DNA of 64,000 nt from Geosiphon pyriformis uo1. Lineage: Eukaryota; Fungi; Glomeromycota. The position numbers and the translations under genes are program-made. The stretch's first letter is position 1, and every line of letters begins with the position of its first letter. The notes below the pieces were generated by a model that was given only the letters and a program-made list of their open reading frames with translations, made no database searches and was not told the origin of the DNA. Positions 56,870 to 63,713 of the stretch are shown piece by piece. Location: contig JAAOMT010000258.1 of assembly GCA_016748015.1 (NCBI GenBank), positions 312,173 through 376,172 on the forward strand. Direction: 5' to 3'.

Positions 56870-57808
56870 ATGTCACAAAATGTCTCTCAAATGAACCATC
56901 TGCTTCTCGATCCCCATCTTCTAAAAAACACCTACATAATCCTTCGCCATGGTCATTCAAAAGCAAATGAAGCCAGACTTGTAGTCTCAAAATTCGAAAA
57001 CGGTGTTCCTTCTAACGGTGTTGGCCCATCAAACGAAGGATGGGGGTTAACAACGTTAGGAAAGCAGCAAGTTTTGAGTGCTGCCCAATCCCTATACAGC
57101 CATCTAGATTCCTTGTCACAAAAATACAGTATAGATTATGGGAGCAATGCAAAGATCAGAGTTTCAATTCATTCATCCCCGTTTCTTCGAGCCGTTGAAA
57201 CTGGAAATATTGTGCATCGCTTTTTTAAATCAAAGCAACTGCTTTTGAATAAACCAGAGAATTCAGAGTTCTTGGATATTGATGAAAAAATTATAATCAA
57301 TAATGATTTAAAAGAACGCGATTTTGGGGAATTTGAATTGAAACCTGACATGGCTTCGTATTTGACGGTGTGGGATATTGATAATGCTCTCTTTTCTCGA
57401 TTTGAAAGTAACCAAGACAAGCAGGAGTCCGATTTAATTGACCACAAACTTTTTGGGGATTTGCAAGACAAGTATAAAGAACTAAGCGTGGAACGCTGTG
57501 ACTAAGTATTACGCCGAATCTATGGAGTTGTATCAGAAATCGAAAAAGAAAATTTTTTAAAAGGAAACGATAAAAAATCCAATTTTCTAAATGAGCAATT
57601 GGACCAAAAACGCGTTATAGTCTTTATAAGTCATGGTGACTCTTTGCAGATTCTTCAGACAGCTTTTGCAAAATTTGATAATTCGACAATTTTTGGGAGT
57701 TCGGCGGGAGAATCAACTCCAAAAAACTTATTTCTTAACGCATACGCCCATCGAAAGCTAAAGCATCTGCAAACGGCTGAATGGCGTGTACTGGAGTGGC
57801 GAAACTGA
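56870..57808 (+). pseudogene. Histidine phosphatase / phosphoglycerate-mutase-like gene interrupted by a single in-frame TAA (57503-57505)
   Basis: LRHGHS.AN, GLT.LGKQQ, SSPFLRAVET and LKERDFGEFE lie before the stop. The same frame continues VLRRIYGVVSEIE...VFISHGDSLQILQ...HR..HLQTAEWR to TGA at 57808. Confidence 0.85.
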
Positions 57809-57999
57809 ATTTAAAATGCTCTATAGCCAGTTAAACAATTTACAAATAGCTAGGATCTTTTAAGAGCCAGGTATAAACCTACAACAATATTAAACGGGTT
57901 AAAATAACTTTCTATTTTTAGGGAGATTGAACGAAAAACTATTATTTATTAGCTTTTTAGTCGACAGTATTTTCTCAATAACATTGAGAAACAAATGAA

Positions 58000-59423
58000 T
58001 TAAAATATTTCGGCTGATAAGCCCAAGGTTGTAGATTTCCGTTTTTTAGCAGCTGAATCACTTTTCTTTGGTGGAACAAGCTTGGCCAATAATTCAGCCA
58101 AAAGTTCACTTGCTTGTGGATAAAATGCCAGATTTTTCATGATATTCTCATATCCAGGCGTACCTCGCACATCCTCAAAATTTTCTTGGACGTAATTCAT
58201 GGTATGCGTTTTTAGATCATCCCACTTCCAAGCCTCACGAAACAAGAATTCGGCTGCGGTATTAATATTTAGATCCTTGCATAGTTTTGCCTTTGCTCTT
58301 TGACGAAGATCTTTGACCAAATACTTGTCCGCAATGGCAAAAAGGGCAATAGGTGATTTTTGTGGCTTATTAACCTCAAAACCAATTTGATCTGTATAAA
58401 AAAACTGGAGCATAGCTAAAACTGTATCATGATCGAAATCCTGAATTTCGATTACCGCTTTAAATTGTGAGTCGGTGGGTGAATCAGCTGAAGATTCTCG
58501 CGACGAAGAATTTTCAATAGTTCCGTGGCGATCGATCATGACATTATTAGATTCAGCCCATTCACCTTCAAAGATTGCTCGAAAATAGTCTGATCGATTT
58601 CGAAGAATGTAGCTATTGCAAAATATACTTTTTTCTTTGACACTGATTTTGACGTCGGCCACTTCTATTTGATCCAAAGAAGATGCCCATGCATTTATTA
58701 ATTCTGATGGGGGATTTTGAGTAGGTCTTGTGATTGTATGTTTGAACTCTACTTGATTTAAAGTAACGCCAATTATCACATCATGTGGAAGGTCAGCGTT
58801 TTTGAAGAAACGGGAATATCCTATTTTATCAAACCGAGATTAATTGAGAAGCAAAACCTTATGAATTCAGATTTATATTGAATGAAATACCTCGCACTGA
58901 TCTTTCCCCTAGAGAATATTTATCTTTGAGTTCCAACGTCTTTTGTTTGATAATTACACTAAATTCAAAATATTCATCAGATAATTTTTAGGAGAAATCG
59001 CTTCTCTAAATCAATTGAATGTATACTCACATCGGCTCTGATGCATCTTTCAAGAAAAGCTCAGCAATGTATGGATTTCTTTCCTCCCAGATTCCTGTTG
59101 AGTATTGTTCTCTAGAATTTGGTATGGCATAAAGATACATCGAGCAAAACTCGGGATCTGCAGTTGAACACTAGCGGCATTATGACATCAAAGAGATATG
59201 AGAGAATATTTTTATGGAGGCTTCCCTTGAAAATTGATTAACCCAGGTTTTCTTTTCCGCCAAAACTCTAGATCATATATACCGGTTTAAAAACCAACTG
59301 CCAGAGGATATCAGCAGCAGTGGAAAAAATTGGACTATATATCTTTCCTTCCACCTTAGATATATCATTCAATGTGAATTCAAAACATCCTTTGGCAATG
59401 ATATTGTTTTCTGCCATGTTCAT
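58000..59423 (-). CDS. MATH-BTB/POZ (SPOP-like) Cul3 adaptor; exons 59423-59283, 59170-59031, 58958-58891, 58820-58000
   Basis: MATH: FEFTL...YSPIF....WQLVFKP...CSMYLYA...RGYSRF. BTB: ADVKISV..IFCNSYILRNRSDYFRAIFEGEWAE...IEIQDFD..VLAMLQFFYT...LFAIADKYLV.DL. Confidence 0.9.
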
Positions 59424-59693
59424 CTTTCCCCGTACCTATCAATAAACTAGTTGGCAAGGTTAAACAAAAATTTGAAAAAAAATCCCGAGTGACCTAATGG
59501 TGTTTTGTATTAGGCCTCTCACCTTTTGTATTCCCGAATTTGTTGATAATTCCTTTGATGATCATGCGATAAGCCCTGAAAGGTCAACAACGTGCAGTCG
59601 GCAATTGCCAAACAAATATGATAAATTAGGCCATTTATGGCGCTTGGTACATAAACGATAACAATTTGAAGTTTTGATGATTGTGGTATTATA

Positions 59694-59894
59694 TGGGACG
59701 TGCTGCGACAAAACCAAAGTGACGCTTTAAAACTTATCAATAAGATAATGGGAAATATGATTAACTTTTTATTCGTTAATTATATGGGGCGTGCCACAAC
59801 AAAAACTAGACAAAGTGACACTCTAAAATTTGATCAATTTCATTTACCAATAAGATAATAGGAAATATGAAAAACTTTTTATTCGTCATTTATA
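59694..59894 (+). repeat. Two tandem ~90-110-bp units, each = variant transposon end + conserved AT-rich block
   Basis: TATA|TGGGACGTGCTGCGACAAAACC----AAAGTGAC (59694) and TATA|TGGGGCGTGCCACAACAAAAACTAGACAAAGTGAC (59785). Each is followed by CAATAAGATAATRGGAAATATGAWWAACTTTTTATTCGT. Confidence 0.85.
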
Positions 59895-60384
59895 TAGGGT
59901 GTGTTGGAACAAAACCAGACAAAGTGAACATCTGACTTTGGTTATTTAAAAGGTATTATCTTTATCTTTTCGCTGGCTTCCTCTGAGAACTCAGAATAGC
60001 ATTTCTTTTATCCCGGCTGTCACTAAGATAGTTTGAATTAGTCATAAAGGAGATTTTCGCCTTGAATTACTTTTACTTCAGAGCTGGGCATGATGTTGGG
60101 CCGTCCAGCAAGGAAAGAGATGCAAACGCGGCGGTGAATATTGCTCTTTCCGAGGCCTCCATCATCCTCTCGTCTGACCACTAACCACTTCCTCCTTTTC
60201 GCCGCGATGTCAATCACACAAGGTACAACCTTGCAAACAAATTCCTTTCAGTCGTGACACCAGAATTGGTTCCCCACGACCCCATTCGAGAATGAATATG
60301 ATAAGGATATTTTGAATTTTTTAATTTTCCTGACTTCTTTATTACACATGTTCACTTTGTCTGGTTTTGTTCCAGCACGCCCCA
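59895..60384 (+). mobile_element. Non-autonomous TIR element carrying a Fanzor/TnpB 3' remnant (TA-flanked, 37-bp TIRs)
   Basis: The left end 59895-59931 (TAGGGTGTGTTGGAACAAAACCAGACAAAGTGAACAT) is the inverted copy (34/37; three transitions) of the right end 60348-60384. TA lies on both outer sides (59893-94, 60385-86). An internal frame carries RDANAAVNI. Confidence 0.88.
60080..60295 (+). pseudogene. Fanzor/TnpB-like RNA-guided nuclease C-terminal fragment (RuvC-III)
   Basis: RAGHDVGPSSKERDANAAVNIALSEASIILSSDH*PLPPFRRDVNHTRYNLANKFLSVVTPELVPHDPIRE*. RDxNAAxNI (60116-60142) is the TnpB/Fanzor RuvC-III signature. One in-frame TAA at 60182-60184. The segment is a GC-rich island. Confidence 0.8.
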
Positions 60385-60402
60385 TAAGTCTGTGTACAAT
60401 AC
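60296..60402 (+). ncRNA. Putative Fanzor omegaRNA (scaffold to the right end at 60384, guide from flanking DNA)
   Basis: Positional inference only: TnpB/Fanzor omegaRNAs derive from the element's 3' end and read into the flank. Here 89 nt separate the stop codon from the element end. Confidence 0.45.
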
Positions 60403-61335
60403 GATATGTATAAAAATGAATAAAAACATATTTTTTCATAAAGTTCTAAGACACAATGAATATTCGAAAAACATAGAAAGATATAGCAAACTTCACTATT
60501 GGCAATATTCTAGAAATCATCTTAAAGCTGTGTAATTTTGATTTTTAGACAATAATGATAATTTATTTAAAAATGGAATATTCAAATTTTTTTTGGAGTT
60601 TTCTTATTTTTATTTGTAATTTTATATAAAATTCCTATCTTGTTTTTTCTACATGTAATTTCATAAATTTTATATCAAATAATAATTAAACAACTATACA
60701 ATAATTTAAATGAAACTTTTTTCACAATTTTTTTTCAATAAAGCATGAATAAAATTTAAATATGTAAATTAACAATCACTTGTTAATCAATTTTTTAAAT
60801 AATATGTTGAGAATATACTTTAATTTTTTAAAATTGAAAGAAAACTGCCTATACTCAAGTAATTAAGGCATTCAATTAATGTTATTCATTTTTATTCTAT
60901 CCTTGTGTATTTTTAGATTTAAACATTTTTAATGCCATGTTCACTAAATTGAAGATCTAATGTAGTATATATGACATAATAAACTAGCATCACCTTATGA
61001 TCAGTTGACAATGTTTCATATTTTGATGAAACGCGAGGAGCCAAAGAATATCAGTAAATTTTAGTAACGAAATATCAGGATTTGTTTGTAACAGGTGATG
61101 CAACACGATTGAAATCAAAAAATGAAAATTGCACTCCATGAACCACTGATGTGCTCCTGCAGTCAACTTTAAATTTGTGTACTTTGTCTTGAATAAATAT
61201 CATTCACTCATTTATTGCTACAAAACATTTTAACCTTCCCTCCCGTTTCTTTTTCCCAAAAACTGACACTCCTTTATCAAGCCTAGTTTCTGGGCGCTAT
61301 GATTTGGTATCTTTTATTTTATTAAATACCTGCTA

Positions 61336-63713
61336 ATGATGAAGTATATTATGAGTTCCAAAGATCACAAATCTCAAAAACAACAAATATCCTCCTCTCT
61401 GCCAGCAATCGAACTCTTTGATGATGATTTTGATTTCTCTGGTGAGGATAGCAACAATAACGAAAACAAAAATAATAATGAAAACAGTGATTATTTTTTC
61501 ACGCGTCAAATATTAAAACTTGGGGCAAGCCTTCGACCAGAATTAGGAGGAAATATTTTTAAGAGTAATGTGGCGGGAAGTCCTACTGCTATTGATGATT
61601 TTGCAATGTTCATTGGGCCAGAAGTTGGTTGGGATCAACAAGCTTTCTCAAACTCCAGCTATGCTTCCAGTTCCACTACATATGATAAAAGCTTTGAGAG
61701 CGAACAAGAAGATTTTGATGATGTTATTTTTCCAGATTCAACTTCGGATTCTTCTTTTTCTTTAACCAGCTGCTATCAACGTTCGTCAATATTTCGAGCT
61801 ACATCGGAATATGACTCAGAAGAATTTTGGTCTGGCCTAGATCCTCAGGAGGTTGAAAGTATTTTTTCTGTAAAAAAAATTCATCAAAATTCAAACATCA
61901 CCCCCTGTTATGAGACAGATGATAAATTATTTGAACAAAGTTTTTCCGGCATGAGTAAACCTCAACCAAATTTACCGAGAATAAATGTGAAAAGTCCAGG
62001 AATCGTGCAACCAAAAACCACTATAAGTTTTTCACAACTTTTAAAATCCACAAACGATACATTTTCCAATTCGGATAAAGCGAAATCATCCAAAAGTCTA
62101 CTGAGCCCTTCAGAAAGTCAAAAAAAGTTTTCAACTTCCAAAATTTCCTTATCAAAATTTCACAAAAAACCAAATATTATCAAAAATGATGCCTTTAACG
62201 CTTTCCATCCAAGCCAAACTTCCCGCAAAGATTCTCAACTGGGCAAAATTTCTCCCACAAAATCATCAAAGGGTTCAGCAAACTTAACGAAATCAAGCTC
62301 ACAAGGACCTTCTGTAAGAAATTCTATTGAGCCTAATTATCCTGAGCGAGGCAAATTCAATAAAACTACGGAGATAATAAAAACAAACAATACCTTGAAA
62401 CTTGAGAGAAAATCAATTGGTTTAAATTCTAAACTGAATTTCCTTGACACAAGCTCACTGCGCATACCATCATCGAAGAAGTTAAATTTAAAAGGTTAAA
62501 TCAATAAAAATTCCTATTTTGAAATCTAATTGCATTCTACTTATTGCTGAATTTTTCAATTTAGAGGACGAAAGAAAAACTGATGAGTTAAAGGATTTTT
62601 CATTTTTGGGCCATCGAAAACATTCAAAAAACATTTTTTCGCACCGCAATTCTAAATCCCTGTCAAGCGCTACTTCATCCAATACTGGTGAATATATTCA
62701 TTCCCTTCTGCTCCATTTATACAAATTTCTCCTAAAATTTCTAAAACATTAGGAAACCCAGAAAACTTACCTTTAATCAGAGAAAATGTCGAAGAAAACT
62801 CACTATCCTTAGAATCTTTTGTTCAAGATCGAAGTCCGAGTTCAAAATGGGTAAATATAACTTGGAAATAAGTTTTAGAAAGCTTCTATTTTGCTTATAT
62901 TGCTTTCAATTAAAATATAGAAGTGGCGAAGAAAACCAACCTTGATTCGGAATTTGAATTCTAGCAAGAGACCCAAGGGTAAATTTTCCACAAAGTCAAA
63001 ATGATTTTACTCAAAGTGAAATTCAAATTTAATTGAAACACTAAAAATTTCATTCCAAATTTAAAGTCATCGGTGAAATGACATACAATCCGGACTTCCA
63101 ACGATGGGATGGTAATGAGTCTATCCTAAAAGAGTTTGAATTTGATAAAAATTACTCTCAATTTCGAATACAACGTCCCGCTTTGATATCTAACACTCAA
63201 TCTATGAAATCAACACACATTATTGGGAATATGATTTTTGACTCTGAAAAAATGTGTTGGAAATGCAATGCAAAAGATTCTCTCGATGATGATATATTAA
63301 AAAACTTTGATGATAATGAACATGATGATTGGGATTTTAGAAAAGATATTGTGTTTGAGCGGCAGAATTCAACTGGTAGCAGTCAGGATTTTGAGGTGGG
63401 CTGTGAGTTCGATGTTACGCCCGCATTTTTATCTAGTTTAATGACAGCAGAGAGGCAACACGGTAACGAAATGTCCAGATGGTACCCTGCGGCTGGATCA
63501 CTAAGAAATGAACAACGGTTCGGGTTACGAGATCCTAATATCCAGCGGGGGTATTTATATGATATTCGAATGGTAATTAGTATTGTTTTCAAATATGTCA
63601 ATTTGTTATGATTGTTATTTCATAACTCCTTGTACCTTTAGGCTTCTTCAAACCGTCGAAACAAACCTAACCGTTATAATGTGACACCACGGGATGGCCG
63701 ATCAAAAAAATGA
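61336..63713 (+). CDS. Byr4/Bfa1-like septation-initiation/mitotic-exit GAP scaffold (exons ~61336-62494, 62565-62687, 62753-62850, 62921-62978, 63067-63572, 63642-63713)
   Basis: C-terminal repeated motifs KPTLIRNL..VIGEMTYNP..QRWDGNE..L..F, RPALISN...IGNMIFDSEKMCW and EFDV...AERQH...W are typical of the Byr4/Bfa1 family. The N-terminus is acidic and Ser-rich, and splicing is in frame. Confidence 0.8.

Follow-up and report, generated by a model that had tools for sequence, protein, structure and literature searches.

The closest described systems include the Spu-1 ghost elements of Spizellomyces punctatus, which are protein-less Fanzor1 derivatives of ~550 nt in a fungal host, bounded by TIRs and keeping the RNA region of the right end (Saito et al. 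2023, PMC10432273). The element described here is alike in these respects and lies in a window of 64,000 nucleotides, the whole stretch of DNA that was analysed, from the fungus Geosiphon pyriformis (contig JAAOMT010000258.1). It differs from the Spu-1 ghosts in having a TIR of the Sola type with an AWWT target duplication, a cognate transposase and a retained coding remnant. Moreover, its scaffold lies over the end of the ORF, no intact nuclease was found in the genome, its copies are old and any guide activity is putative. For SpuFz1 itself we know of no transposase.

The Sola2-Fanzor1 chimeras of dictyostelids (DFa-1/2/3 and PPa-1/4/5; Bao and Jurka 2013, PMC3627910) likewise carry Fanzor1 at the 3' side of a Sola transposon, generate 4-bp AWWT duplications and have deletion derivatives without transposase. 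Compared with these, the present family has a fungal host, a TIR of 36 bp rather than 12-22 bp and TGA at tryptophan positions of its transposase. PpFz1, SpuFz1 and GtFz1 provide the closest solved structures (Xu et al. 2024, PMC11423790); they share the rearranged RuvC-II beside the zinc finger, and their omegaRNAs equally place a 7-bp stem and a short stem beside the guide. Protein identity to these enzymes is, however, only ~15%, and neither that study nor the other Fanzor literature searched mentions an intron in a Fanzor omegaRNA. Finally, in IStrons, which combine a group I intron with a TnpB omegaRNA, splice signals similarly overlap the transposon end and the guide-RNA scaffold, according to the preprint (bioRxiv 2023.11.20.567912).

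Very probably the element is non-autonomous and MITE-like, derived by deletion from a composite Sola1-like transposon with Fanzor1 at its right end; it would be a dead copy whose living parent would make an omegaRNA with an intron. Judged from sequence, the family probably joins a Sola1-like transposase written in genetic code 4 to a nuclear Fanzor1 whose guide RNA contains a spliceosomal intron. We take the window copy itself for an ordinary fossil, and the interest lies in the family.

The element and its composite parent

Inverted repeats of 42 nt with 90% complementarity were found in the window at 59893-59934 and 60345-60386, and the TIR-like pattern gave four matches in the window where 0.01 were expected. 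Comparison with the family set the element at 59896-60383 (488 bp), with 36-bp TIRs of a Sola1-like family at 59896-59931 (plus strand) and 60348-60383 (minus strand). The two repeats differ by three substitutions, all in the left arm. The TIR-bounded mini-transposon of the first-pass annotation is therefore real, with these revised dimensions, and the repeat quoted for it is that of the right arm only.

A search of the G. pyriformis genome (128.3 Mb, 792 contigs) gave ~30 good matches at the DNA level for the element and 58 matches for the TIR. At 50 ends the four bases outside the TIR conformed to AWWT in 44 cases, being ATAT in 38, AAAT in four and ATTT in two. Identical 4-bp flanks were present in nine of the 11 two-ended elements, the pairs including ATAT/ATAT, ATTT/ATTT (L033) and AAAT/AAAT (L041), which is at odds with a strict TA duplication of the Tc1/Mariner type. 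From sequence alone the terminal T may be assigned to the TIR or to the duplication, with strict TA excluded either way. The AWWT target duplication is a hallmark of Sola1 (PMC3845634) and also occurs in the Sola2-Fanzor chimeras (PMC3627910). In the window copy it reads ATAT on the left (59892-59895), adjoining the inner left TIR, and ATAA, one change from ATAT, on the right (60384-60387). The TA previously noted on both sides is present, but as the middle of these four bases, and the Spu-1- or Mariner-like duplication deduced from it gives way to one of the Sola type. The alignment of copies that had been proposed for defining the ends yielded both the 36-bp TIR and the AWWT flanks.

To the left, positions 59695-59895 (plus strand) consist of two degenerate tandem left-end units of 91 and 110 bp, each made of a TIR and ~70 bp and preceded by ATAT, and the outer left end of the element may lie at 59695. 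The same TIR-plus-70-bp unit adjoins copies L010 and L024/L029, which suggests a sub-lineage with repeated left ends. Since these units recur beside other copies, the left flank is not host target DNA. The TAM that had been read from it comes from this repeated end of an element; across the family, the target on the 5' side ends in AWWT and in most cases in ATAT.

Inside the TIRs, a conserved left segment of ~165 bp (59932-60097) is common to family copies only, and was absent from the intact Fanzor loci and the long transposase-bearing copies compared. It is followed by a Fanzor1 C-terminal remnant on the plus strand (60098-60295), which contains the RDANAAVNI frame recognised from the outset, with the RuvC-III Asp codon at 60119-60121, and from which the second half of the zinc finger is deleted. 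The native stop codon (60293-60295) lies 89 nt from the right end, as in intact relatives and as originally stated; the stop within the peptide quoted alongside (60182-60184), however, is a premature CAA>TAA change 200 nt from that end, where other copies keep CAA. As in a ghost element, the window copy retains both ends and the right-end RNA region, has lost the nuclease ORF and is one of many copies. Its location is an intergenic region of 1.85 kb that separates two divergent genes, a transcribed BTB/POZ gene (57694-59450, minus strand), in which three spliced introns were seen, and a transcribed, spliced gene without Pfam match (61300-63000, plus strand).

Short fragments of 40-85 aa gave no match on their own in Pfam or in a PDB search, and the fragment search that had been recommended failed in this form. 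A profile of natural fragments found 37 proteins of Fanzor type (best E 3e-41), and the family profile matched SpuFz1 (9e-6) and PpFz1 (4e-5) in the PDB. In two intact loci from metagenomes, L051 and L052, the RuvC exon is open and encodes each of the three catalytic motifs; both loci end in the same right TIR and are 85% identical at the DNA level to window positions 60115-60386 (~270 nt). Relatives with RuvC-I, RuvC-II and this TIR thus exist, whose absence the first-pass annotation would have counted against its reading. Intact relatives (L051, L052, L058 and L059) carry GTDPG, NEYNTSKTCPFC, CVHPRC and RDANAAANI, so that the RuvC-I Asp, the RuvC-II Glu ~six residues before a C4 zinc finger and the RuvC-III RD of Fanzor1 were all found in relatives, and RuvC-III only in the window copy. 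An AlphaFold model of the protein (pLDDT 78) had PpFz1 or SpuFz1 as its top six Foldseek matches, with PpFz1, SpuFz1 and GtFz1 ranking first. By these matches the family protein is a Fanzor1, and RNA-guided, TAM-dependent cleavage is its predicted function. The profile, DNA and fold matches also uphold the view that this genome of the Glomeromycotina has a transposon family carrying Fanzor1, of which the element is a member with an internal deletion.

The genome-wide TIR search, likewise suggested earlier, recovered transposase-bearing elements with the same TIR. The elements bounded by this TIR are 5-9 kb long, and most encode a DUF7869/DDE transposase (DUF7869 E 1e-17, DDE match weak). The genome has 121 matches to this transposase, of which many contain a single TGA. 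In otherwise open frames TGA occupies tryptophan positions and is exchanged from copy to copy with TGG, as under the Mollicutes code; such loci are L031, L033, L034, L035, L041 and L049 in G. pyriformis and L054:250-1941 in Jimgerdemannia. By eye, ORFs beside the TGA-bearing transposase resemble Mollicutes-related endobacterial proteins. We tentatively take the transposase to belong to Sola, and within it to Sola1, on its motifs and on the contrast with printed Sola2 proteins. Its motifs DNAGGQNKN and GHTKFKCD are unlike the Sola2 proteins printed in PMC3627910 and Sola1-like in look. As far as such features can tell, the parent is a Sola1-like transposon. Neither the transposase nor the TIR was found in GTDB genomes, and no Fanzor in IMG/VR; direct evidence of an endobacterial copy is therefore lacking.

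The layout of the parent was pieced together from three loci. L054 (Jimgerdemannia) shows a minus-strand transposase and a plus-strand Fanzor together with the right TIR, while the left TIR of this composite was not captured; L036 (Geosiphon) has the left TIR, cargo, transposase and the first part of Fanzor; and in L049 (Geosiphon) the left TIR and the transposase are found with the middle region that is shared. Together they give the order (left TIR), cargo ORFs, Sola DDE transposase (minus strand), Fanzor1 (plus strand), right TIR. Because of these composite loci and the shared right end, we regard the mini-element as an internal deletion derivative of the Sola-Fanzor composite. The derivative, of ~550 bp, retained the left TIR, ~175 bp of left segment and the last ~335 bp of the Fanzor unit; it reached tens of sites and then decayed. 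The Sola transposase would have moved it in trans, through the shared TIRs, into AWWT sites.

Fanzor1 in the composite uses the standard code and has an intron-like interruption in its coding region. A code-4 reading of Fanzor itself was considered and rejected, tryptophan being TGG throughout the open Fanzor frames. Transposase and Fanzor remnants in the composite orientation, located by coordinates only, were also noted at G000:C555:119086-127038 and G000:C436:93209-94657, which suggests further composites on these contigs. A ~240-aa ORF, or first Fanzor exon, lies upstream of Fanzor (L060:633-1361, L059:4668-5360 and L054:3750-4500); it is conserved among composites and has no Pfam match.

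The predicted omegaRNA scaffold and its candidate intron

Across 15 relatives, identity at third codon positions climbs from ~0.5 to 0.73-0.78 within the final 30 codons of the Fanzor ORF. The last ~90 coding nt fold into three hairpins in which 96% of cells are paired, with three compensatory pairs, a covariation that comes from few, related sequences and is modest evidence. Folding of this region gave z-scores between -2.2 and -4.2 for 11 of the 12 relatives, in which the segment after the stop codon scored about zero, and -2.3 for the window copy. Conserved RNA hairpins within the end of the ORF, as predicted by folding, are a family-level feature that is new here. In the window the predicted omegaRNA scaffold spans 60203-60300 (plus strand), with hairpins at 60219-60233, 60250-60281 and 60283-60294; the second has a 7-bp outer stem, and the third is damaged in this copy by a 3-nt deletion. 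The seven-pair stem resembles SL1 of the solved Fanzor1 RNAs (PMC11423790). The omegaRNA had first been placed at 60296-60400, but conservation and structure lie upstream. The 89-nt post-stop segment was rejected as the scaffold: it reached a z-score of -2.3 for the window's exact cut only, and -0.9 to +1.1 for other cuts and in intact relatives.

In intact relatives, an ATATG after the stop codon can pair with the last TIR base and the ATAT duplication. In solved Fanzor complexes the 3' copy of the duplication belongs to the scaffold and the 5' copy to the TAM (PMC13565253), and the pairing fits this scaffold role of the 3' duplication. The earlier start of the guide at TAAG is set aside on the same structural grounds. 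We infer a TAM ending in AWWT and a guide that is predicted to start at 60388, the would-be guide position being the host flank at 60388-60402 (plus strand). In the living parent, the omegaRNA would be made from the 3' end of the Fanzor transcript and would run from the three hairpins in the last ~90 coding nt through a terminal stem, formed by ATATG with the end of the TIR and the ATAT duplication, to the guide. By analogy with SpuFz1, a TAM ending in AWWT would lead to cutting of empty sites and restorative homing. Such homing can be tested here, since this fungal Fanzor1 comes with its cognate transposase and the AWWT TAM can be predicted.

Five bases after the stop codon, all 13 relatives compared have GT, followed by A or G at +3, A at +4 (13/13) and G at +5 (12/13), and conservation drops beyond. 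Beyond this donor-like site the sequence is variable and AT-rich, followed by a branch-like CTGAC and by a YAG that leaves eight bases to the end of the TIR; L056, L058 and L061 have perfect TACTAAC branch points. The segment is 56-124 nt long, compared with 65-112 nt for host introns in the window. The sequence marks of a U2 intron (GTRAG, branch point, YAG and a variable, host-like length) are hence present in the relatives. In the window copy, the candidate intron as read from these relatives spans 60301-60375 (plus strand), with CTGAC at 60330-60334 and an acceptor AG that ends at 60375, inside the right TIR; its donor is mutated from GT to AT. We think it likely that the post-stop segment, lying inside the terminal stem, is a real spliceosomal intron in the family.

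Removal of the segment creates a junction hairpin of 5-7 bp in the close family, in L056, which is without this TIR, and in the distant L075 (GCA_000723665, presumably Lichtheimia). Only removal makes the stem of L056 and L075 contiguous. Compared with random joins, the junction hairpin gave values of 0.04-0.17 in six of seven loci and 0.57 in L068, which are marginal and not independent. Among other distant relatives, L077 has GTAAGT ten bases after the stop, no clear GTRAG donor was found after the stop in L072 and L073, and L078 has an intron in the coding end instead.

A somewhat unlikely alternative is that the segment is never spliced and forms a long variable loop closed by an ATATG(G)/(C)CATAT stem, giving an omegaRNA of ~190-230 nt in which GTRAG is kept for protein or RNA contacts. 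The terminal pairing could form unspliced too, the acceptor lies within the TIR and would be conserved anyway for transposition, and Fanzor1 omegaRNAs tolerate dispensable stem-loops (PMC11423790). No spliced terminal junction was seen in the RNA run X2, in which the transcribed copies are L002, without a donor, and L022, without an acceptor. The published 71-nt omegaRNA of PpFz1 (PMC11423790 Table S3), recovered unspliced from yeast, has CAG-GTAAGC just after its 7-bp stem, at a similar position, a donor-like site that may be due to chance. Against a loop, however, position +3 varies between A and G only, as in donors read by U1, with no matching change on a partner strand. The perfect TACTAAC sequences, the host-like lengths and the stems of L056 and L075 likewise argue for an intron.

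Were the segment spliced, its removal might instead inactivate or regulate the guide, as in IStrons, or serve the 3'-end processing of the mRNA only, the unspliced form being the one that works; we hold this to be improbable. Introns in the 3' UTR near stop codons are a common regulatory device. In bacterial IStrons, splicing and guide formation compete for the same sequence (bioRxiv 2023.11.20.567912). The interior of the segment, however, has no conserved sequence or fold (z about 0), and its removal leaves a compact, well-folded scaffold (spliced z -1.0 to -3.8 in relatives).

If the segment is a spliceosomal intron, as we favour, splicing may even be needed for a working guide, a step that we take tentatively. 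An omegaRNA with such an intron would mean that, for this clade, guides are wrong when they are deduced from genomic sequence or produced in yeast or bacteria. It could explain failed or weak Fanzor reconstitutions, and it offers a compact scaffold of ~105 nt. With rather less than even confidence, we also propose that in this Mucoromycota Fanzor1 clade the spliceosome matures the guide, the terminal stem between the ORF-overlapping scaffold and the TIR end, target duplication and guide closing only once the short post-stop intron is out, and that the Sola transposase, in the Mollicutes code, is expressed in an endobacterium, with the nuclease and the guide in the fungal nucleus.

Decay and expression of the copies

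Copies of the mini-element are 6-12% diverged from their consensus. Divergence in the coding remnant is 0.062, 0.063 and 0.068 at the three codon positions, with no position bias. Among copies, divergence was 0.050 in the scaffold, 0.055 in the left segment and 0.071 in the coding remnant, and the scaffold region is not clearly better preserved than the left segment. No intact cognate Fanzor was found among the best-scoring genome candidates, every long match having several stops; these searches score the best candidates only, from which an intact gene could have escaped. The window copy has the donor AT, the right duplication ATAA and the 3-nt deletion in the third hairpin, and is very probably dead, a fossil.

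One of three public runs (X2) was judged to be RNA, because spliced host introns were seen on both sides of the element. Its contigs, in which small RNAs are not visible, include none of the window copy. The copy L002:1501-1983 (G000:C338) matches a 2189-nt RNA contig (depth 248) and is probably carried in a host transcript. Another copy, L022:1487-1831 (G000:C784), matches an RNA contig (depth 235) and occupies, in sense orientation, the 3' end of an Atf1-like bZIP gene. It is annotated as the last 70 residues of that gene (KAG9284042.1, Geosiphon pyriformis), which is either real exonisation or an annotation artefact.

It is very improbable that a Fanzor made elsewhere takes up the omegaRNA of the window element and is guided by it to cut in trans, a role that the first-pass annotation had allowed for. 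Ghost omegaRNAs of S. punctatus do work with SpuFz1 (PMC10432273), the scaffold region in the window still folds (z -2.3) and the two copies above are transcribed within longer RNAs. However, no intact cognate nuclease was found among the scored candidates, the scaffold has diverged much like the left segment and the coding remnant, as in neutral decay, and the copy has no RNA contig in X2. In addition, the would-be guide has eight other TAM-adjacent matches in the genome at two mismatches against five for the control, not clearly above background. That the element is an ordinary MITE with a chance RuvC-III-like peptide can be dismissed: the short fragments do lack Pfam matches of their own, but intact Fanzor loci that share its TIR are 85% identical to it across 270 nt of DNA, and the profile and fold matches also speak against a MITE of this kind.

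Spread of the family

Over the Fanzor part of the mini-element consensus, identity is 88-89% with a contig of Morchella conica and with several contigs from metagenomes, and 85% with Jimgerdemannia; the transposase regions of Geosiphon and Jimgerdemannia are also 85% identical. The Morchella locus (L053:7405-9103, ML119161.1) lies on an ascomycete contig of 321 kb and is a deleted copy of the Fanzor unit with 89% identity to the consensus from Geosiphon. Taken with a transposase in an endobacterial code, the close relatives found in Geosiphon, Jimgerdemannia, Entrophospora and the Morchella contig suggest that this OMEGA system spread horizontally among soil fungi. Such transfer is the likely explanation, and contamination of the Morchella assembly may be the alternative. 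In a small tree, the Geosiphon copies group with the Morchella copy with moderate support.
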